DNA of 64,000 nt from NCBI GenBank assembly GCA_977030845.1, contig OZ365115.1, positions 17,050,001 through 17,114,000 on the forward strand, in the 5' to 3' direction. Each line of letters begins with the position of its first letter. Within the stretch, counting starts at the first letter, position 1. The notes under the pieces were generated by a model, which saw only the letters and a program-made list of their open reading frames with translations, made no database searches and was not told the origin of the DNA. The DNA comes from Fimbriosthenelais zetlandica. Taxonomy: Eukaryota. The position numbers were made by a program, and so were the translations under genes. Below are positions 35,000 to 57,100 of this stretch, in pieces.

Positions 35000-35131
35000 N
35001 NNNNNNNNNNNNNNNNNNNNNNNNNNNNNNNNNNNNNNNNNNNNNNNNNNNNNNNNNNNNNNNNNNNNNNNNNNNNNNNNNNNNNNNNNNNNNNNNNNNN
35101 NNNNNNNNNNNNNNNNNNNNNNNNNNNNNNN
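35000..35131. other. Assembly gap (132 N) inside a CT-rich repeat
   Basis: Run of N. Confidence 1.
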
Positions 35132-42100: not shown

Positions 42101-45100
42101 ATCCACTATCTTAGATTAATTATAACAGGTAGTTGAGGGAGGTAGCCCCTAATCGACCAAGTGCAAAAGTAAAATATCCACTTCCTTAGATCAATTATAA
42201 CAGGTAGTGGAGGGAGATAGCCTTTAACCGACCAAATGAGAAAGTAAAATATCCACTAACTCTTTACCAGTTAATCGCTTCAACGGCTTGAGGAGTTTCG
42301 GACCCCAAAACAAGAGTCAAAAAGTTTGCAATCTAACCAATTCCCTCCTTAAGGACCTCCACTTCCAATTCCACGATCAAGTCTCTTTCTTAAGATAAAC
42401 CGTTCCTTAAATTTTCCTATATTACACAAAGAAGCAATGCTTTTACCAGCAGAAAACGATAAAAATTCCATATATGTAATTATTACAAACCCTAGTTCCT
42501 TCTATCTTCGGTCCACACCCCAACACAAATGATAAATATCTCAACACAAGAGAGATCTCACACTTAACAGTGATAGTGATGTCATAATAGGTCAACAAGG
42601 TTCCCCGTTCTAAATAACTTCTTGCTGACATCAGATCTGTTCAGGATTTCTTGGATCAGTTTTTCTCCTCAGATAGACAGACACCAAAAGCCACAGAAGT
42701 AATTGGGGTTTTTATTTTATTGCAAAAGAATTTAAATGTACTGGTACATTCCAGAAATGTACTGAAAAAATACTTTTCCCTGAGTCATTTCTTTTCAGGT
42801 ATTATTTGAGTATTACTAAAAATACCAGCATAAGATATAGGTGGAAGGCAATCGTAAATACGGTTATTTTTCAAGAAAATCCTATACCCTTTTATCCAAC
42901 CCACTACCTCATTATACACCCCCCCCCCTCATCGTTCATGGTCCTCACTCCTGTCATCACCTCAGCCCAGCCCAACCAACCCCGCCCCCCATCCCTTTAT
43001 CCCCATGCAACCCTTCAAATCCCACCCATCAACACAAGCTTAATCCATCCCTTCATTATACTGTATTATGTCTGCTGCGTGTATCTTTTCCAATCAGCCT
43101 ACTGGGCAAACACGATCTATAATAGTACATGATCCGACCGCTGGCAACCATTGGACTGTTTGATGAGCAAACAGGAGTGTCGATCGTACGGTCAATTTTG
43201 AAGCACTTCTCTCATCACATCTTTCTCATACTGATCAGTATATATATGAGCATTGCATCCAGGTGACAAGGTGAGTAACTCAGTAAGGTACAATATCCTA
43301 GAGTTATAATACTCCCATTTAAGAAACCGATACTCAACTTTGGTCTAAAAAAAAGAGCCAACAGTGTACAAAATTCATCCAAAAAGGCATTTCTAAGATG
43401 TGAGAAGTTTAGTATAAGATACACGAATTATTATATCGACTCACTGAAGAATAACTTTCTTCTTTCCCCTATTTTTTATTTGTTTTATACTGAGCCGTCG
43501 ACAGTTTAGGTTTTTATTTCGCGAAAAGATCAAACTGCGATTTTCAAAGCTAACAAAGACACTCAAATCATCAATTTAAGATCTGGATCTTCTGCCGCAA
43601 CTGCCACAAGCGTACCTGCCGTTATCAGAGCCTTGCTATTTGCAAATGGCTTGGCAGATATGTACAGTACAGTCTGTTCACTCTAAGTTGATCCGAAACT
43701 ACCATACATATGTACTGTGGTTTCGGATCAACTAAGTGGAAGCCATAGAAAAGTCAACAAAAAGGGCCAGCCGCAACAAAAAGGTAATACTCGGATAGCA
43801 AAAGAACCCCAGTGGAGGGTCCCCATGAACAGTTTCACAGAGGCAAAGTTGGCTAGGTTTGGACAGGTATACATACATGTATATGAAAAGCATTCTAGTG
43901 AGTGTTGATGTTATCTTTGAGTCACTGTATTTTAATGTGACCTGTACGTGCGCACCTGTCGCATAAGTCATTAATGTATGAAAAATCAATATTATTATCT
44001 TTGGAGGGTTTATATCCTAAATTTATACTAGATCTCCTCAAACCCCTACCAAAAGACATCACCAGGAGGCATAATTTCCTCACATTATCACGTGTATGTG
44101 TTTTATCCCTTTGACATAATAACAGATCCATAATCTTCAAATCCCTCTAACCATAACTTGCTAGTTACATAAATGCGCACTATAGGTTACCATACAAGTT
44201 AATCTTCCCCACGCGGAAACATTCACTTTTTATATTGTCCTTTGAAAACTATTAAAGTCCATTGGTGATTGAATATGTATATCAATGAGTGAATTATGTA
44301 CTTAATAATTATGGATGTGTAGTAATAAAGTGGTAATAAAGATTATATTTGCATACCATATGATAGCACCGCATCGCACCAAATGGTTAAAAGATTAATA
44401 AATCAAAATTCACTACTAACTTCCTCTGACCTCTCCTTTTTAAACAATGCCTGTTCCATCCAGTTCGGCATTTGAAATGTATACTTCCTGTTAATTGGCT
44501 GACAAATTATTCTTTCCAGACAGGGAATTGAGGAAGGAGACGAGAAAAATGGCAGGACAGGAGGATCTGAAATATAACAGCCTTAGAAAGGTGACTTATA
44601 TTCTAACATGGTGTACAGCGACCATCTTGTACACCAATCAATGGATACAGGCCTACCGCAAACACCCCGACTACCTCCAGCTCACCGCCTCTCAATTCTC
44701 TATCGCTCTCATCATCCAACTGTTATATCTACTTCTCTACAAGAGAGACAACCACAGAGGAGAGCTCCAAAAATGGCCAAATTTCCTCGAGTCCACAGTC
44801 GTGGGTTTCCTTTTCTTGATTTCAGATTTGTGCCTCACCGCAGCCTTTGTAACTACCCCAGTGGCTGTGGTCTTCACAATCAAACTTCTGGATCCTGGTA
44901 TCAGCAAGATGAGATATGTCAAAGATTATCGCATAGGTTATCTCATAAAGGATCTCTTACCAGTGGCCGTCTTAGTTGCCATAGTAACAGGACTAAACCC
45001 GGGCTTTACAGGAAGTGGCGCCATCTTTGCCACCATTTCACTGGTAACATTTCATTTGGGTCGTAACAGATTGAAGGGTCCAAACCAAACAGTGATTGAA

Positions 45101-48100
45101 AATTTGGAGCCCCAAAAGATGAATTCAAAACTGAATTTCTTCGGAAGTTGTGGAGATGAAGTTGTTATTTTCATGACATTGTTGACTGGTAGTTTACTGG
45201 GTGTTGCTGGTGTTTTGATCCATGGACAAATCAATGCAAATTTCTGTCACACCATCAGACCGCAAGTGGCTTGGTTGGCACTCTACTTTTTCATCCAAAA
45301 GAATATGTCCTTATTGTTCTATATGGGGACGACCAGGTCATACTCTGGAACGATCAGTAGCCTACAAACTGTCTCAATAATCCTGGCAAGCACTTTCTTA
45401 CAGAGAAATGCAGTCTCTGTCCTATCAACATTGGTAACTTTGGCTGCTGTCCTAGTGGTCTGCCTGCAGGACTTTCTGGGTAAGAAATCAGATCAGGAAG
45501 GGGAAAGGACATCTCAGATTACAACCGATTCCTCTACTTTTAGTTCTACAAGGTCTACGGTGAGGTTCGTTAGGTTTCTAGCTGTCACGTTTCTAATCTA
45601 CCTTGCTGTACTCCATACCTGCAACACAAAGACAGGTTCACTAAAGAAAGGGGAGGGACCACCAACAATACGCGTGGCTTGGACCTTTACAGAAAATATA
45701 TCGGACGCACATCTGAAGAACTTTTTGAACATACAACATAGTTTTCCTGGCTCAAAAATGGAAATTTTTTGTTCAAATGAAGCCTGTATGAAATCTGTAG
45801 CCACCATGAGCAGCACACAAGATGTCAAGGCTTCTCGTTTACAGATTTTTGACTTGACAAATGGCACTCCTTTACATCAGTGGGTCTCCAGACATCCAAT
45901 TTTGAAAATTCAGGCAGGGCCCCACTATGAGAGACACTTACAAAAGGTGCTGCAATTAGCTCTTCTATGGAAGTACGGCGAAATCGTAGTGGATGCCAAT
46001 ATAAAAATAACTCATATGGAAGCATTTGAAACCAAAGTCAGGAAAATGGATGGCAATGTATGCTACAATGGAAATAACCTGCCTTTAGCATTGTGCTACA
46101 CTGAAAAATCAGGTCATCCATTTATAAGGCATTTGATGACGAATTTTGTTGCCAGCTATCAAATCAAGGGTCCGACAGTGTGGCCTTCTAAATGGCAATA
46201 CAAACAGGACATTTGGCCTTATGACTTTGATTTTACCAATTTTGTGGATAACTACTCACATAATTGCACACATCCATGTACCAAAATCCCAATAAAAAAT
46301 ACATCGCCAAGTCTAGCCTTAGATAGGGTCTTAAAAAGAAAAAAAATTGCCCTGTTAAGCTACACTACAACAAACTTTGGGGACGAAATCCAGAGCTTGG
46401 CAGTAGCACATCTTTTGCCTCGTGTGGATTATTTAATACAACGAGAAAACCCTAAAACAATACCAGCCGAAGATGTTGTTCTTGTAACAAACGCATTTTG
46501 GACACATAAAGGGATACTTTTTCAATCACCTAACTCTATTAAACCTCTATTAGTGTCCGTGCATTTGAATAACATTATAAAAGGTATAGAATCTAAGGTT
46601 ACAAAATCTAAGGAGTATTTCATAAAACATGGGCCTGTGGGAACAAGAGACACCAACACCTTGAAAATATTTAAATCTCTTGGAATTCCAGCTGTCTTTT
46701 GTGGGTGCATGACATTGTGGATTAAAAACCCATTTGATTACGGACACCCCAGAGGGAACAAGATATACATAGTGGACATCCAGGGGTCACCTAAACAGTT
46801 ACTTCCTAATTCTATAATAAAAAATGCCAAAGTCCTGCAGCACTCTCTGGGAACGCCACGGGGAAGTCAGGTACGCTTTCGTGTGGCAGAAGAGCTGCTA
46901 CGAATGTACGCTCAGGCAAAACTAGTCATTACAGGACGAATACATGTGGCACTTCCCTGTGTAGCCCTGGGCACGCCTGTAATTTTCCTAAACAAAAAAA
47001 CACTCTATGGTGCGACATCTGAATCGCCTTCAGCCAGAGTGACTGGGTTGTTAGATCTGTTCCATACAGTAGATTGGTATAAAATGACAGACGTAGAAAT
47101 TAAGAATTTCTTACATAACTTTAACTGGGATAATCCGCCACCTAATCCCAATCCTGAACTCGCACGCAAGCTGATGAAGACAACCAAGGGGATGGTAACA
47201 AAGGATGAAAGTATAAAAAATGCTATGGACATGTACTATGATTTTAATGCTTGATGTTCTGAATTCCCATTCCCAAAAGAAGCGTCCACATGCAGAACGA
47301 TCTAAACCACATTCATACTATTGTGTGAAAATCCAGGTAGTAGATTCAAAACATCATACGTTAAACTAGGAAGGCCAATCTTTATACCCTTGCAGTCAAG
47401 GGCTGGAATTATTTTTAACATGTCTTGAGTTCGCAAACCAAAGGTTGAATACTGATGGTGCTGCTATCACCAATTCACTAGTTGTGACTCTGTTCTGCTC
47501 ATGGATCGACGCTTGAACTGTCTTACTTTGAGCGGTAATTCAAAATGATGTACAGTGTATGTTTTTTGGTTTGTAATTTTCCGGGAGATTTTCGGGTTAT
47601 TTTCTTCAATAAAATCATAGCAGGTTATTCAATATTTTGTTATGATTAATAAAAACCAGTCCTTACAAGTCGAGATAACGTTTTAGCTCTCAGACAGATG
47701 ATAAAATTTACGACTTTTTAAGACCTATCCCAGCAGGCACAAGACGTCTTCACAACGTCTTTAGACGTTGTAGATTAGACGTTGTGAAGACGTCTTGTGC
47801 CTGCTGGGATGAGCTTTATATAAGAGCTAAGACCTAAAAAAACAGGTTGCAAATGACAAACACAGAATCCTAACAGTTACTATGTACTGTAAGAAGCACT
47901 AGAGAAGCACTGGAGTACCAGTCGGTGCTGCCCTCTGTCAAAACAGATTACTACTCATCACTTTCTTATGGCGACCAATTTTACTATTAAGATAGATGCA
48001 TACTTTAATTACATTTTTTTTTTCAAATTACATCAAAAACCTGGACATGTTCAATTATGTGAATAGTTATCCACAAATACGGTGAAATTGAAATCATAAG

Positions 48101-51100
48101 ACCAAATTTCCCTTTTGAATATCAATTCATAAGGCGACACTGAAGGACCCTTGAATTGATAGCTGGCAACAAACAACTGATTGTTCAGTTTGGATGTCTT
48201 GAGACCCACTTATATGAAGGAATGCCGTATGTCAAAATCTGTAAACAATAATAATAAGCATCCGAAAAAACCGACCGACCTATTTGCTCATAATTATGCT
48301 TAATTATATTCATTACATAGCCCCATGGCCATAACGTCAGGTTAATGATGTCATCTTTAGATTGTAGATCGATGTGAAGGGTGTACACCCACCGACAAAA
48401 CATCCCAGAAAACATTTAATGTACAAGTAAGAAAAGGTAGTATTTCACTCTGAGTGACGTCTAGAGATGATTTCAGGGGTGGTACAGAGCCCACCCACTC
48501 ACCAACCCCATCCCTCCTCATTCGAATGTACATTCGAAGTCCAAAGGTTCTTCCACATAGGAAGATAATAAAAAATATTATTTCTTCAATTAACTCGACC
48601 CATTCTCAAAGATACATCTATAGAAAAAGTGTATCACGTGTAATATTTGTCACACATGGATTTGCATTAGAAGCTGCTAAATTAGCAAAAAACCACTATT
48701 GGCAAGGGGACGGCTATTAGCAAGGTAAATTGCTATTAGTAAGGGGACTGCTTTTAAACATTCTTGGTGAATATCTTTCACAACACGGAAATTAGGGAGG
48801 AGAAATGACGAGAAGTGGAAATCTGAAGTGTAGCAGCCTACAGGTGACTTATATTCTAACATGGTGTACAGCGACCATCTTGTACACCAATCAATGGATA
48901 CAGGCCTACCATAACCACCCCGACTACCTCCAGCTCACCGCCTCTCAATTCTCTATCACTCTCACCATCCAACTGTTCTGTCTACTTCTCTACAAGAGAG
49001 ACAACCACAGAGGAGAGCTCCAAAAATGGCCAAATTTCCTCGAGTCCACAGTCGTGGGTTTTCTTTTCTTGATTTCAGATTTGTGCCTCACCGCAGCCTT
49101 TGTAACTACCCCAGTGGCTGTGGTCTTCACAATCAAACTTCTGGATCCTGTTATCAGCAAGATGAGATATGTCAAAGATTATCTCATAGGTTATCTCATA
49201 AAGGAGCTATTACCAGTGGCCATCTTAGTTGCCATAGCAACAGGACTAAACCCGGGCTTTACAGGAAGTGGCACCATCTTTGCCACCATTTCACTGGTAA
49301 CATTTCATTTGGGTCGCATCAGACTGAAAGATCCTAATACAGGAGTGAATGAAAATTCCAAAAAGACAGGATGTGAAAAATTGAACTGCCTTCCAAGATA
49401 TGAAGTTGTTATTTTCATGACATTGTTGACTGGTAGTTTACTGGGTGTCGCTGGTGTTTTGATCCATGGACAAATCAATGCAAATTTCTGTCACGCCATC
49501 AGACCGCAAGTGGCTTGGTTGGCACTCTACTTTTTTATCCAAAAGAATATGTCTTTATTGGTCTATATGGGGACGAGCAGGTCATACTCTGGGACGATCA
49601 GTAGCCTACAAACCGTCTCAATCATTCTGGCAAGCACTTACTTACAGGGAAATGCAGTCTCTGTCCTATCAACATTGGTAACTTGGGCTGCTGTCCTAGT
49701 GGTCTGCCTGCAGGACTCAGATCGGAATTTAAGGGAAAACAGATCTCAGACTACGACAAATTCTTCTGATTTTTCATATGGATCTGGTCTGATGTCTACA
49801 CTGAAGTTCGCCAGATTTCTAGCTATCACATTTCTAATCTATCTTGCAGTCTTCCACATCTGTAGAAATAGCCAGGGAAAACCACCAACAATACGTGTGG
49901 CTTGGACCTTTACAGAAAAGATATCGGACGCACATCTGAACAACCTTTTGAATGTACAACATAGTTTTCCTGGCTCAACAATGGAAGTTTTCTGTTCAAA
50001 TGAAGCCTGTATGAAATCTGTAGCCATCATTAGCAGTGCACAGGATGTCAAGGCTTCTCGTTTGCAGATTTTTGACTTGACAAATGGCACTCCTTTACAT
50101 CAGTGGGTCTCCAGACATCCAATATTGAAAATTCAGGCAGGGCCTCACTATGAGAGACACTTACAAAAGGTGCTGCAATTAGCTCTTCTATGGAAGTACG
50201 GCGAAATTGTAGTGGATGCCAATATAAAAATAACTCATATGGAAGCATTTGAAACCGAAGTCAGGAAAATTGATGGCAATGTATGCTACAATGGAAATAA
50301 CCTGCCTTTAGCATTGTGCTACACTGAAAAATCAGGTCATCCATTTATAAGACATCTGATGACGAATTTTGTTGCCAGCTATCAAATCAAGGGTCCGACA
50401 GTGTGGCCTTCTAAATGGCGATACAAAAAGGACATTTGGCCTTATGACTTTAATTTTACCAACTTTGTAGATAAATATTCACATAATTGTACAAATCAAT
50501 GTACTGGAATACCAATTAAAAACTCATCAATAACATTTGATAAGGTTTTAAAAGGACAGAAATTCGCCCTTTTATGCTACAGTTCGGACAATATTGGGGA
50601 CGAGATCCAGAGTTTGGCAGCAGCACATGTTTTGCCACGTGTGGATTATTTCATACAACGAGACAACCCTAAAACAATACCTGCCGAAAATGTCGTACTT
50701 ATAGCTAATGGATTCTGGCCAAAAGAAGGCATACTTTTCCAGTCCCCTAACACGATCAAACCTCTCTTGGTGGCAATGCATTTGGATAACATTATAAAAG
50801 TTATAGAATCTAAGGTTACAAAATCAAAGGAGTATTTCATCAAACATGGACCTGTGGGAACAAGAGACATCAACTCTTTGAAAATATTTCATTCACTTGG
50901 AATTCCAGCTGTATTCAGTGGTTGCATGACGTTGTGGATTCGGAACGCATTTGGTCATGAACAGCCCAGGGAGAATAAGATATACATAGTAGGGTCATCT
51001 GAGCCATTACTTCCTCAGTCGGTGAGAAAAAATGCGATCTATTTGACTCACACAGTTAATTTTCCAAACAATAAATACGAGCGCTTTCGTGTGGCAGAAG

Positions 51101-54100
51101 AGCTGTTGCGAATGTATGCCAATGCAAAACTAGTTATTTCATCTAGAGTACATGTTGCACTTCCTTGTGTAGCCATGGGCACGCCAATCATTTTCTTAAA
51201 CCGAAAAAGCATGTATGGGGCAACAACGAGAAGCCCTTCGGCCAGAGTGTCAGGGTTGTTAGATCTGTTCCATACAGTAGATTGGTATAAGATGACAGAC
51301 GCAGAGATTAAGAACTTCTTACATAACTTTAACTGGGATAATCCACCACCTAATCCAAATCCTGAACTCGCACGCAAGCTGATGAAGACAACCAGGGGGA
51401 TATTAACAAAGGATGACATTATCAAAGATTCCTTGCACATGTACTATGATTTTATTGCTAATCATTATTGAGTTGGAAATTTACATTAATTATTTTATTT
51501 TCAATAAAACTATAATTTAATTATAATTTGTAAAGACAAAATAATACACTAAGCACGGAAGAGTGGCATATCTCTGGACATTTTCTGCGCATTTTAGATC
51601 CATATATGAGAAAAACCATGCACAGAAAAAAAGCTATATAAAATATTTTATATTGCTGATGAGCTATTAAGACGAAATTTATGAGGCGTAACCATATAAT
51701 TATCGAACAAACATCATGGGTGTTTCATTGAGGGATTACTTACGACGCCTGAAGATGCGAAAAGACAGTTCAGAATAGAATTGTGAATTATTGGAATGTA
51801 CTATTTATTATTTTTATAAATGACATACTTAATTAGCCTCTTTGTTCTCGTGTATCGATGAATGCGGACGATACTGCCTTTGTTTTGATAGATGACGACC
51901 TAAACAATTTGTACAATTTAATGCAAAACGATACTAAGCAATTTTCGTCCTGGTGTGCTAATACTGGTTTAAAAATTAATAGTAAACAATCCTTCTCACA
52001 AATAAATTGTAAGAAATCTCTGAAAGGTGTTGTCAATTCATGTAATTGTAAACTCAAGTGTAATAATGACGAAATAGTTTTAAAACGCACTGTAACATAC
52101 CTTGGAATTAAATTAGACTGGATCGGAGTACAGCCATATTGGTGCTAAAGACCTTCCTCCTACCTATCCTTGATTTCGGTATTAAAAAAATGGAGAAGAA
52201 ATATCTGGAAATAGATTTCACTCGGATGACTTGGTATACATAGAGGACGACACAAATGTATATAAAATGTAACCCAGTGCCCCAGTGGCACACGCTGGCA
52301 ACTTGTCACACATGGCTAATCCCTGGGTCACCCAGTCCATCCATTAGAAACTCTGCTATCTTGGGCTAGGGTCTCCATTTAATAATTTCCTGGCAAATAA
52401 CTTTTTCACGATCTGGCAATGATACCGGAAATGACGGGAAGTGGGAATCTGAAATATAACAGCCTACAGGTGACTTATATTCTAACATGGTGTACAGCCA
52501 CCATCTTGTACACCAATCAATGGACCCAAGCCTACCACAAACACCCCGACTACTTCCAGCTCACCGCCTCTCAATTCTTCCTCGCTCTAGTCATCCAACT
52601 GTTCTATATACTTCTATACAAGAGAGACAACCAGAGAGCAGAGCCCCCAAAATGGCCGAATTTCCAGATCTCAGTCGTAAGCATCCTTTTCTTGATTTCA
52701 GATTTGTGCCTCACCGCAGCCTTTGTAACTACCCCAGTGGCTGTGGTCTTCACAATCAAACTTCTGGATCCTGTTATCAGCAAAATTAGATGCATCAAAG
52801 ATTGTCTCATAAAGGAGGTATTACTAGTGGCCATCTTAGTTGCCATAGCAACAGGACTAAACCCGGGCTTTACAGGAAGTGGCACCATCTTTGCCATCAT
52901 TTCACTGGTAACATTTCATTTGAGTCGCATCAGACTGAAAGATCCAAATGCAGTAGTGAATGAAAATTCCAAAAAGACCGGATGTGTAAAATTTAACTTC
53001 CTTCCAAGATATGAAGTTGTTATTTTCATGACATTGTTGACTGGTAGTTTACTGGGTGTCGCTGGTGTTTTGATCCATGGACAAATCAATGCAAATTTCT
53101 GCCATGCCATCAGACCGCAAGTGGCTTGGTTGGCACTCTACTTTTTCATCCAAAAGAATATGTCTTTATTGGTCTATATGGGGACGAGCAGGTCATACTC
53201 TGGAACGATCAGTAGCCTACAAACTGTCTCAATAATCCTGGCAAGCACTTACTTACAGGGAAATGCAGTCTCTGTCCTATCAACATTGGTAACTTGGGCT
53301 GCTGTCCTAGTGGTCTGCCTGCAGGACTCAGATCGGAAAAGGGAAAACAGATCTCAGATGACGACAGATTCTTCTGATTTTTCATATGGATCTGTTCTGA
53401 TGTCTACACTGAAGTTCGCCAGATTTCTAGCTATCACATTTCTAATCTACCTTGCAGTCTTCCATATCTGCAGAAATAGCCAGAGAAAACCACCAACAAT
53501 ACGTGTGGCTTGGACCTTTACAGAAAAGATATCGGACGCATATCTGAACAACCTTTTGAATGTACAACATAGTTTTCCTGGCTCAACAATGGAAGTTTTC
53601 TGTTCAAATGAAGCCTGTATGAAATCTGTAGCCACCATGAGCAGTACACAGGATGTCAAGGCTTCTCGTTTACAGATTTTTGACTTGACAAATGGCACTC
53701 CTTTACATCAGTGGGTCTCCAGACATCCAATATTGAAAATTCAGGCAGGGCCTCACTATGAGAGACACTTACAAAAGGTGCTGCAATTAGCGCTTCAATG
53801 GAAGTACGGTGAAATTGTAGTGGATGCCAATATAAAAATAACTCATATGCAAGCATTTGAAACCGAAGTCAGGAAAATGGATGGCAATGTATGCTACAAT
53901 GGAAATAACCTGCCTTTAGCATTGTGCTACACTGAAAAATCAGGTCATCCGTTTATAAGACATCTGATGACGAATTTTGTTGACAGCTATGAAATCAAGG
54001 GTCCGACAATGTGGCCTTCTAAATGGCAATGGAAATCCGAAAGAGACATTTGGCCTCATGACTTTAATTTTAATAACTTTGTCAACAACTATTCACTTGC

Positions 54101-57100
54101 TTGTACAAGTCCTTGTACCAGAATTCCAATAATACATGCGCAAGAGAGCTTAGAATTAGATCCTGTCTTAAATAGTAAGAAATTTGCCCTAATACGATAC
54201 TACCGTACCGACAATATAGGGGATGAAGTTCAAAGCTTGGCTGCAGCACATGTTTTGCCTCGGGTTGACCATTTCATACAAAGAGACAATGCAATAACTA
54301 TACCAGCCGAAAATGTTGTACTTATAACTAATGCATTTTGGCCAAAAGAAGGGGTAATTTTCCAATCGCCTAACACTGTTAAGCCTCTATTAGTGGCAGT
54401 TCATTTGGATGATACAGAAGAAGGATTGGAAGCCCGAGTTACAAAAGCCAAGGAGTATTTCATAAAACATGGGCCTGTTGGAACAAGAGACACCAACTCC
54501 TTGAATATTTTAAATTCGCTTGGAATTCCAGCTCTATTCAGTGGCTGTATGACATTGTGGATTCAAAACCCATTTGGTCATAAACTACCCAGGGGGAACG
54601 AGATATATGTTGTGGACGTAGTGAGGGGACAAGAGCCATTACTTCCTGAATTTGTTAGAAAAAATGGCGTCTTCTTAAAACACATCAGGGGGTTTCCAGA
54701 TAATCACCAGGTAAAATTTCGCATAGGAGAAGAACTGCTACGAATGTACGCACAGGCAAAAGTAGTGGTGACAGCTCACATACATGTGGCACTTCCCTGT
54801 GTAGCCATGGGCACGCCAGTCATTTTCTTCAATCGAAGAAACTTGGTGGGTGCCTCCAGTAAAAAACCCTCAGCCAGAGTGACTGGGTTGTTAGATCTGT
54901 TCCATACAGTAGATTGGTATAAGATGACAGACGTAGAAATTAAGAACTACTTACATAATTTTAATTGGGATAATCCACCACCTAATCCCAATGCAGAAAA
55001 TGCAAAGGAGATGATGAAGACAATGAGGGGCATGTTAACAAAGGATGACAGTATCAAAAATTCTATAGATATGTACTATGGTTTTTAGTGTGTATATGAC
55101 TTGTATACATGTATACATGTTTATGGTGACATAAATTTGCCCGCGTGCTACGTGGCAAAGGGGATGAATCACTTTATTATTAATTTAACTGCACGATTTT
55201 GATTATTATTATTATACGCTAGTAGTTACGCTTGAAAGCTTCCATGGGTCGATTCATCTGAAGAATTCACCAAGAATTCGGAAATTCTCCCCGAGTTCAG
55301 GTCGTTGATTCTCTTGAAATAACGTTATATATTTATCTTCAATTCATGAAGATCTATGCAACTCCGTTTTTTTTCTTCTAAGAAAACTAATTAATCCATG
55401 ACAAGATCTTCGAACTTGGACTACCTAGGTGAGTTGGCATGGACCAACTACCATGATAATAGTTGGTGAATGGATTGAATGCCATCTATTTTTTTACATG
55501 TTAATTAATGATCATTACATGTTAATTGTAACTTTGTTTAAACAATTTTTGAAAACGAATAAAGTTATTCTCTCATTGTTTTTCTATATCCGACCTAAAT
55601 CATACAAAGTTCCCACTACATATTAGTCATAAGCAGGTTATAATGCACTATACACTGCTTGTCCCATATATATATGAGATGCACGGATGCAATCAATGGT
55701 GATTTAACGCCATGCATGGATGCATCGTTCTCGCTGACACACATAGGTTGGAAAAAACCTTTTCCTTGACTTTTCGATGTAGTATGGCAACCCTATACAT
55801 ATTGGTTCTGAAAACATCCCCTAGGGTGGAGACAGTCGAAGTTTATGAATACAAATTTTATTTTTATCTAGTCCGTATAGTTAATAACAATACGGACTAC
55901 TGTAGTCCCGTATATTTAATAATAATACGGACTGCATTATTCATAGTGACGGCCTCTTTCTTGAATTTCTCAGCAAAAACAAAAGAAAATCGGTGCAACT
56001 AAGAAGCCTGGAGAATCACCGGCGAATGACTGAGTGCTGCCCTCTTTCAAAACCCAATGGTACTAAACTAAACTCATCACGTTCTCATATGGGACCAGTT
56101 ACTTTCACTATAATATATACAATCAAGTAGATATAATATGAATGTATGTATACATAGGCCTACTGAATTTGTGTAAGATGTAAATTCTATACCATGACAT
56201 TTAGGGACGTTTTGAAGGGCATAATTATATTAAGGTCTAACTATAATCAGTTGACTTCTACTTTTCCATCATCATTATTAATCGTCGTAAGTCCTCGAAA
56301 AATCATAATTTCATTTCGGAATTTTTTCACTGTGTCTGTGACTGTCACACATTAGTTTCATTGACACCGATTGCAATAAATTATCCTTCCTTTAACATCC
56401 TTTGTCCTGTCACATGTTCTCCGTGTCAGCATTTGATCAATGAATATATGTGACGAAATAAACAAAGAATACAAAATTACAAAAATGGGACTGTCTCGGT
56501 AAGTATCTGTCCTGATTAAAACCAAAGAGAAATCTCGAATACAGAGCCTATAAAAGGGCCTGGCAAATACAATATATTATCATTGGCGTGAGAGAGAAAA
56601 AAACAGTGTCATAAGCTTCAGAAAGCTAATCCCAGACGCAAGGGTCGATATGAATTATCTCATAAATCCAGCGCCTGCAGACAAGCCTCTGTTGTCTTTG
56701 TGTGCGGGATTATCTTAGAGGATTAACGAGAAAGTGTATATACATGTACGTCTCTATGGCTGGTGTACTATCTGTCTAAGGCCTAAAGTCAAAATTAGCA
56801 TAAAGCTGTATACGGGCCAGGCCCAATTAATATTAATGGGTTTTTGTCTTTTGTATTTTTCACTATCTATGAATTTCCTGTGAACATTTATACGCATAAA
56901 GCTATACATTCTGTTCACTCTAAGTTGATCCGAAACTACCATACATATGTACTGCGGTTTCGGATCAACTTATAGAGTGAACAGACTGTAGGATAATATT
57001 AGGACCATCAATGCTGCTAGTGTCTTTGGCACCATTATAATTGAACATTTAAAAAAAACAATACATGTATGCTTGGTGTATGAATATGAAAAATGCATTT

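Follow-up and report, generated by a model that had tools for sequence, protein, structure and literature searches.

Pyruvylated glycans have been described in a sea-hare glycolipid and in sponge proteoglycans, and the reviews that cover them name no animal enzyme (PMC6801904; PMC6994554). A related system is that of fission yeast, in which Pet1p and Pet2p import phosphoenolpyruvate (PEP) into the Golgi for the pyruvyltransferase Pvg1p (PMC6801904). Our literature search found no characterised animal pyruvyltransferase, nor any dead domain derived from glycosyltransferase family 32 (GT32) that is fused between a transporter and a pyruvyltransferase. Here we analyzed a 64,000-nucleotide stretch of the genome of Fimbriosthenelais zetlandica (contig OZ365115.1, positions 17,050,001 to 17,114,000; hereafter the window), in which three tandem genes each encode a transporter-like membrane domain, a GT32-like middle domain (the A domain), and a pyruvyltransferase domain. 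We give a probability of roughly 0.7 to the reading that these genes encode Golgi-type fusions in which the A domain would be an ancient pseudo-glycosyltransferase serving as a scaffold or binding module, and that the near-identity of part of this domain among the copies arose mostly by gene conversion. Neither non-catalytic GT-A domains nor conversion between tandem paralogs is new in itself. The combination of transporter, dead GT32 domain, and pyruvyltransferase defines a family that is a candidate animal pyruvyltransferase, and its pseudo-glycosyltransferase domain is conserved across phyla to a degree that merits testing.

The window genes resemble the fission-yeast system in that their C-terminal domain matches PS_pyruv_trans and the Pvg1p structure (5ax7), and in that, among their relatives, a bona fide TPT domain and the enzyme share one chain. 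They differ from it in that the transporter and the enzyme are separate in yeast, with no GT32-like domain, and in that the transporter signature of the window genes is degenerate. The three genes lie uninterrupted in tandem on the plus strand between 44.5 and 55.1 kb of the window, and each encodes about 890 amino acids:

44549..47254, plus strand: copy 1, an intact open reading frame (ORF) of 901 amino acids from an ATG, with membrane, GT32-like middle, and pyruvyltransferase domains
48805..51471, plus strand: copy 2, an intact ORF of 888 amino acids with the architecture of copy 1
52419..55088, plus strand: copy 3, an intact ORF of 889 amino acids with the architecture of copy 1

In the protein alignment, identity to copy 1 is 81% for copy 2 and 76% for copy 3. 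DNA similarity among the copies is bounded by the start and stop codons, and a comparison of the flanks, those upstream included, found no similarity outside of the coding sequence. When the full copies were compared with Pfam, only the C-terminal polysaccharide pyruvyltransferase domain was recognized (E 2e-10 to 8e-14).

The middle of each protein had been labelled GT32 in an earlier note on this DNA, made from the letters alone. The relevant features are:

45659..46315 (copy 1), 49882-50538 (copy 2), and about 53490-54158 (copy 3), plus strand: the A domain, placed with AlphaFold (AF2), Foldseek, and hhalign
45671..45688 (copy 1), plus strand: first beta-strand RVAWTF, with a family-invariant Trp (W13 of the A-domain alignment) at the position of the IHxIW Trp of YeGT and GT32

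The label holds for the fold but not for the family model. An hmmscan of the A domain of all three copies returned no Pfam family even at E<=10, so the PF04488 Gly_transf_sug model was not matched. A word-indexed homology search with the whole of copy 2 likewise gave no matches. An exhaustive HMMER search with the A domain, covering 1.84 billion cluster representatives, recovered 115 relatives, the closest of which is only 37% identical over the domain. Two main architectures were seen among the relatives, namely a TPT transporter followed by an A domain and a pyruvyltransferase, and, in proteins of 1,100-1,200 amino acids, the same three parts together with a second, canonical GT32 domain (the B domain) that has both Gly_transf_sug and Gb3_synth hits. 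Single-sequence searches of the PDB with the A and pyruvyltransferase domains gave chance matches only, and profiles were required. A profile of 52 A domains aligned to one of 17 B domains in hhalign (98.6%, E 1.4e-15), and the only PDB hit of the A-domain profile was YeGT (E 0.028, over 180 residues). The AF2 model of copy 2 residues 355-600 has a predicted local distance difference test score (pLDDT) of 86 and a predicted template modelling score (pTM) of 0.86, and its best Swiss-Prot matches in Foldseek are all GT32 proteins (At4g19900, A4GALT, A4GNT, IPC mannosyltransferases, Sur1/Csh1, and Och1), with E of 4e-10 to 1e-3 for A4GALT, A4GNT, At4g19900, and Och1. The best matches among solved structures are PaToxG, YeGT, Lgt1, and SseK3. 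Because the hhalign result, the YeGT profile match, the AF2 model, and the Foldseek matches agree, we assign the A domain to a predicted GT-A fold of the GT32 lineage that has diverged beyond the family model.

Compared with enzymes of CAZy family GT32, covered by Pfam Gly_transf_sug (A4GALT, A4GNT, Och1, Sur1/Csh1, and IPC mannosyltransferases), the A domain shares the GT-A fold and its topology, an IHxIW-type first strand, a TPxExW/F segment, and the L..L[WY]K.GG core of the signature. It differs from them in having lost the upstream Asp and Arg, the Tyr, and the second Asp of the DxD motif, in lacking a Gb3_synth-type C-terminal region, and in forming one chain with a membrane domain before it and a pyruvyltransferase after it. 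Toxin-type GT-A enzymes (YeGT, PaToxG, Lgt1, SseK/NleB, and the TcdB family) have the D..R...Y.DxD spacing in common, but these are active enzymes with the full signature; the likeness of the A domain to them is one of fold only and gives no hint of a toxin function.

The loss of the catalytic signature is apparent from the translation of copy 1, in which positions 45659-46201 of the plus strand read in frame from PPTIRVAW to PSKWQY:

45938..46000 (copy 1), plus strand: degenerate GT32 signature LQKVLQLALLWKYGEIVVDAN, from the translation

As had been pointed out before, DAN stands here in place of DxD, and we found it in all three copies (45992-46000, 50215-50223, and 53823-53831), which share the whole motif except for one change in copy 3 (LLW to LQW). 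The D..R...Y.DxD signature reads K..Q...V.DAN in the window copies, so that D, R, Y, D, x, and D are represented by K, Q, V, D, A, and N, and GG has become GE, although the second Gly is kept in 47 of 49 relatives. The suspected catalytic degeneracy is thus borne out. We take the signature residues D, R, Y, D, and D to be the equivalents of D270, R273, Y284, D286, and D288 of TcdB. Each of these five residues is required for activity in TcdB-type enzymes. The canonical B domains retain them almost without exception, with D in 15/17, R in 17/17, Y in 17/17, and the two Asp of DxD in 17/17 each. At the same columns, including the one between the two Asp, the A domains of 49 homologs have E16/D8/K6, Q14/R13/K7, Y32/V10, D26/N12, P37, and T12/D6, with S also found at the first DxD Asp and T, D, R, or S at the last column. 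The closest three-domain relatives (P0001, P0004, P0005, and P0009) have DLD at the DxD position, but their upstream Asp and Arg are gone; another close relative has DAR, and a protein of the krill Meganyctiphanes norvegica has DMA. Kept throughout the family are the first-strand Trp, a Cys pair, another Trp, and the motif FExHLQ...LLWxxGGxYxDP. As about 50 relatives from other invertebrates likewise have a degenerate version of the domain, the loss must be old, and judging from these sequences it is ancient and family-wide rather than peculiar to the window locus.

These residues also bear on whether the A domain could still be a glycosyltransferase with a non-canonical active site, adding a sugar that the neighbouring domain then pyruvylates. 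The GT-A fold, the equivalent of the uracil-stacking Trp, and the first Asp of DxD are all retained, and the pyruvyltransferase follows immediately after the A domain. Leads to bacterial clusters that combine a pyruvyltransferase with Pfam-recognisable GT32 and Caps_synth domains also came from an Atlas feature search, which makes no alignments and yields nothing beyond leads. However, four of the five signature residues of the family's canonical GT32 domains have been replaced, and the near-invariant second Gly is gone from the window copies. The larger relatives, moreover, carry a separate canonical GT32 domain, which suggests that the A domain is not the source of that activity. We regard a working glycosyltransferase as highly improbable.

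Part of the A domain is nearly identical among the three copies:

45830-46195 (copy 1), 50053-50418 (copy 2), and 53661-54026 (copy 3), plus strand: the 122-residue block ASRLQIF...PSKW, from the alignment

The block has 2 residue differences between copies 1 and 2, and 6 each between copies 1 and 3 and copies 2 and 3, in agreement with the counts of the earlier note for the two pairs involving copy 1. In the three-way alignment, the block (columns 436-557) has 7 variable columns, which is also the minimum reached by a sliding window of 122 residues (at columns 415-536), while the next best of the windows that do not overlap it, which lies in the membrane domain, has 19 to 20. The claim that this is the stretch most conserved among the copies was therefore correct, though for copies 2 and 3 alone a membrane-domain window (columns 207-328) is even closer, with 2 differences.

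It had been proposed that this near-identity marks a pseudoenzyme retained as a putative glycan- or glycolipid-binding or dimerisation module, with recent conversion as the alternative. The synonymous sites favour the alternative. Nei-Gojobori estimates of synonymous (dS) and non-synonymous (dN) divergence for the three pairs of copies, together with the features concerned, are as follows:

44549..46195 (copy 1), 48805-50418 (copy 2), and 52419-54026 (copy 3), plus strand: low-divergence, putatively converted 5' tract, from breakpoints and mosaic patterns
46340..47251 (copy 1), 50575-51468 (copy 2), and 54201-55085 (copy 3), plus strand: pyruvyltransferase domain, of old divergence, from Pfam and Pvg1p-type matches
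122-residue block: dS 0.08 / 0.11 / 0.05, dN 0.007 / 0.021 / 0.021
Membrane domain: dS 0.12-0.16, dN 0.06-0.11
Pyruvyltransferase domain: dS 0.52-0.73, dN 0.15-0.21

A maximum chi-square breakpoint was found at columns 558-574 in all three pairs (0/200 permutations reached the observed value), and the block ends directly before it, at column 557. Using synonymous changes only, 5-9% of codons for the same residue differ upstream versus 24-29% downstream, with the breakpoint at columns 574-588 (0/500 permutations). The identity of the odd copy also switches along the genes, from copy 3 in columns 31-150 to copy 1 in columns 150-420, with a further breakpoint for copy 1 at column 372, and after column 558 all three copies are about equidistant. 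The heterogeneous synonymous divergence, the breakpoints, and the mosaic signal that characterize gene conversion are thus all present. Because of the low 5' dS, the sharp synonymous breakpoint, and the mosaic site patterns, we attribute the near-identity of the block mostly to concerted evolution of the 5' 1.67 kb by repeated non-allelic gene conversion, as read from the aligned copies. The 3' end of the tract coincides with a low-confidence loop past the folded core (pLDDT <50 at model residues 176-188), and cross-species identity of the loop and linker after the core is 14-23%; this poorly conserved linker is plausibly where conversion tracts stop. As in other cases of conversion between tandem paralogs, there is a synonymous drop over part of the gene, mosaic patterns, and a tract end at poorly conserved sequence, and nothing about the window case is unusual in this respect. 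A general lesson for such analyses is that near-identity of tandem paralogs is no proof of constraint without a check of synonymous sites, as the signal here is mostly concerted evolution. The G+C content at third codon positions is slightly higher in the converted tract (0.44-0.46 versus 0.36-0.39); this fits biased conversion, but we did not use it as evidence, as the composition of the domains may also account for it.

A history of selection only, in which the block stayed nearly identical as a pseudoenzyme under exceptionally strong purifying selection with no recombination, would agree with the ratio of dN to dS (omega), which is lower in the block (0.08-0.38) than in any other segment (0.5-0.7 in the membrane domain and 0.24-0.35 in the pyruvyltransferase domain), with its having the fewest variable columns, and with its conservation across the family. 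Nonetheless, selection at the protein level cannot cut synonymous divergence 5- to 10-fold, nor can it give rise to the sharp synonymous breakpoint or the switching odd copy; the membrane domain, moreover, also has a low dS despite its higher omega. We therefore consider selection by itself very unlikely to account for the block. An overlapping antisense feature under selection was also considered as a cause of the low dS and was rejected, since the tract covers 1.67 kb in all three genes with shifting donor-recipient patterns.

Another possibility is a chimeric history, with old 3' parts acquiring young 5' parts through unequal crossing-over or a recent partial duplication. The tandem arrangement speaks for it, as does the step in divergence at columns 558-574 in all three pairs. 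A single crossover, however, should leave the chimera equally close to both parents, to one in its 5' part and to the other in its 3' part, and dS in the 3' part is at least 0.52 in every pair, compared with 0.05-0.16 in the 5' part. The absence of any young pair in the 3' third thus speaks against one unequal crossover; the 5' part, moreover, is itself a mosaic, and the upstream flanks are dissimilar. We find this history unlikely; as it would also be a form of non-allelic recombination, our conclusion on the block would be unchanged.

An inverted relic of the gene lies on the minus strand between copies 1 and 2 (48036-48235). It has 62% identity to copy 2 residues 522-569 by tblastn and contains a stop codon, and an adjoining 60-bp piece matches the region of the 122-residue block. 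The relic spans sequence around the conversion breakpoint.

Purifying selection is also detectable. When changes were counted on a star tree, 9 in the block were synonymous and 7 non-synonymous, compared with a neutral expectation of 79% non-synonymous (binomial p=0.002), and the block's ratio of non-synonymous to synonymous changes (N/S), 0.78, is the lowest of all segments. The earlier note had named a dS as low as dN as grounds for abandoning constraint, and these counts show that this is not the case in the block. We conclude from these substitutions that modest purifying selection acts on the block in addition to conversion. In three-domain relatives, identity is 39% in the core, 44% in the pyruvyltransferase domain, and 33% in the transporter domain; in four-domain relatives the respective values are 44%, 39.5%, and 33%. 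Between species, the block and the catalytic pyruvyltransferase domain are thus conserved to about the same degree. The long-term retention of a dead domain across species is the actual evidence for a function, and together with the low dN among the copies it upholds the idea that the domain has been retained under constraint. The species are too distant for a synonymous comparison, as the closest relative is only 37% identical over the A domain and synonymous sites are saturated. Near-identical pairs of relatives differ at 2-20 residues each, and 4/34 of these differences fall in the core, which is too few per domain.

The pyruvyltransferase domain is the part of these proteins most readily recognized. 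PS_pyruv_trans (PF04230) is matched at E 7e-13, 8e-14, and 2e-10 in copies 1-3 (41.6-52.7 bits, with a cut-off of 25.3), and the Pvg1p-type motifs NxGD, GxRD, and RxH are intact in copies 1 and 2. In copy 3, His787 (54777-54779) replaces the Arg of RxH, which is found in copies 1 and 2 and in all relatives with intact motifs. This Arg aligns with R337 of Pvg1p, a proposed PEP-binding residue (PMC4872226). Judging from this substitution, pyruvyltransferase activity may be weakened or absent in copy 3. The membrane domain is homologous to the TPT domains of the relatives (hhalign 98.5%). No match to Pfam TPT (PF03151) was found for the membrane domain of any of the three copies, and these lack the conserved Lys-Arg pair: the KR found within TH..LN.IKR in the relatives has become QT in SSLQTV (45356-45373, 49600-49617, and 53211-53228), and the VRN motif is altered too. 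The transporter-like domain may no longer carry phosphorylated substrates.

Such losses raise the question of whether the genes are simply decaying or non-functional, their conservation being merely a sign of youth. Both the missing KR motif and TPT match in the membrane domain of all copies and the His in place of the PEP-binding Arg in copy 3 could be taken in this sense. Set against this, all three 2.7-kb ORFs are intact despite a dS of 0.5-0.7 in the 3' third, where omega is 0.24-0.35, and the non-synonymous fraction is significantly below neutral in every domain. We give decay very little credence.

Among the four-domain relatives, the pyruvyltransferase motifs and the transporter KR pair are both degenerate in P0007, P0016, P0017, P0022, P0027, and P0031, and both intact in P0008, P0018, and P0043. 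The window copies and P0002 depart from this pattern. Such co-variation would fit coupled PEP import and pyruvyl transfer.

The A and pyruvyltransferase domains are predicted to form a single unit. The two-domain AF2 model has a pLDDT of 87 and a pTM of 0.89 and is confident as one rigid body, its C-terminal half matches yeast Pvg1p (5ax7), and the whole superposes on a 963-residue protein of the AlphaFold DB with a template modelling score of 0.77 over 523 residues. A further hydrophobic helix, found by a hydropathy scan, lies at the junction of the transporter-like and A domains (residues 335-353 of copy 2):

45566..45622 (copy 1), 49807-49863 (copy 2), and 53415-53471 (copy 3), plus strand: extra hydrophobic helix

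We therefore propose a single-chain Golgi-type protein that would consist of a transporter-like membrane domain of the triose-phosphate/nucleotide-sugar transporter superfamily, an anchor helix, a luminal A domain, and a luminal pyruvyltransferase. The extra helix is probably a signal-anchor, which would put the A and pyruvyltransferase domains on the luminal side in a type-II, Golgi-like topology. The A domain would be an ancient pseudo-glycosyltransferase that has lost its residues for metal and uridine diphosphate (UDP)-sugar binding and kept its fold, packed on the pyruvyltransferase as a non-catalytic scaffold or ligand-binding module. At the gene level, repeated conversion has kept the 5' 1.67 kb alike and stops at the linker, with purifying selection (omega about 0.2) acting on top. 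Given the model and the conservation, the A domain most probably serves the pyruvyltransferase as an integral structural part, either a scaffold or a ligand-binding module, without catalysis of its own.

As a retained non-catalytic GT-A module, the A domain has its nearest functional analogue in the GT1 domain of the collagen galactosyltransferase COLGALT1 (GLT25D1), which is reported to be a GT-A domain without a direct catalytic role in a multi-domain luminal glycan-modifying enzyme and to be needed for folding stability (PMC12003778). GT1 still binds Ca2+ and UDP-Gal and is paired with a second GT-A domain, while the partner of the A domain is a GT-B-like pyruvyltransferase. Binding of a glycan, glycolipid, or nucleotide by the A domain is possible in view of its modelled fold. 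A more specific version, which we hold tentatively and consider less probable than not, is that the A domain is a repurposed ligand-binding module for an acceptor glycan, glycolipid, or nucleotide that sets the substrates of the fused pyruvyltransferase. If true, it would determine the specificity of an uncharacterised family of animal glycan-pyruvylation enzymes, with members in molluscs, brachiopods, krill, and some protists.

Several points weigh against the combined reading of a pseudo-glycosyltransferase module under constraint with near-identity mostly by conversion. The N/S of the block differs significantly neither from that of the membrane domain and the rest of the tract (1.94, Fisher p=0.10) nor from that of the pyruvyltransferase domain (1.33, Fisher p=0.31), so that these counts do not single out the block as specially constrained within this genome. 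Residual nucleotide or metal binding may persist in part of the family, as the closest three-domain relatives keep DLD. The scaffold or binding role has as its basis a predicted model and conservation, and the conversions were judged from three copies of one genome.

The GT-A and pyruvyltransferase unit is also found in AlphaFold DB proteins of very varied length (A0A2R2MKL3, A0A2R5GDD9, B8LCX4, and bacterial entries), some of which carry sugar-phosphate-transporter names. The matches seen are single ORFs, like the intronless window genes. The bacterial clusters among the Atlas leads pair the pyruvyltransferase with a GT32 that Pfam can recognize. The unit may have descended from a bifunctional enzyme of bacterial type.

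The window as a whole is eukaryotic in character, with about 39% G+C, and its Atlas neighbours, which serve as leads only, suggest Mollusca. It contains an assembly gap (N) at 35000-35131, and an 820-amino-acid ORF at 18222-20684 on the plus strand has endonuclease and reverse-transcriptase domains, as in retrotransposons of the long interspersed nuclear element (LINE) type.

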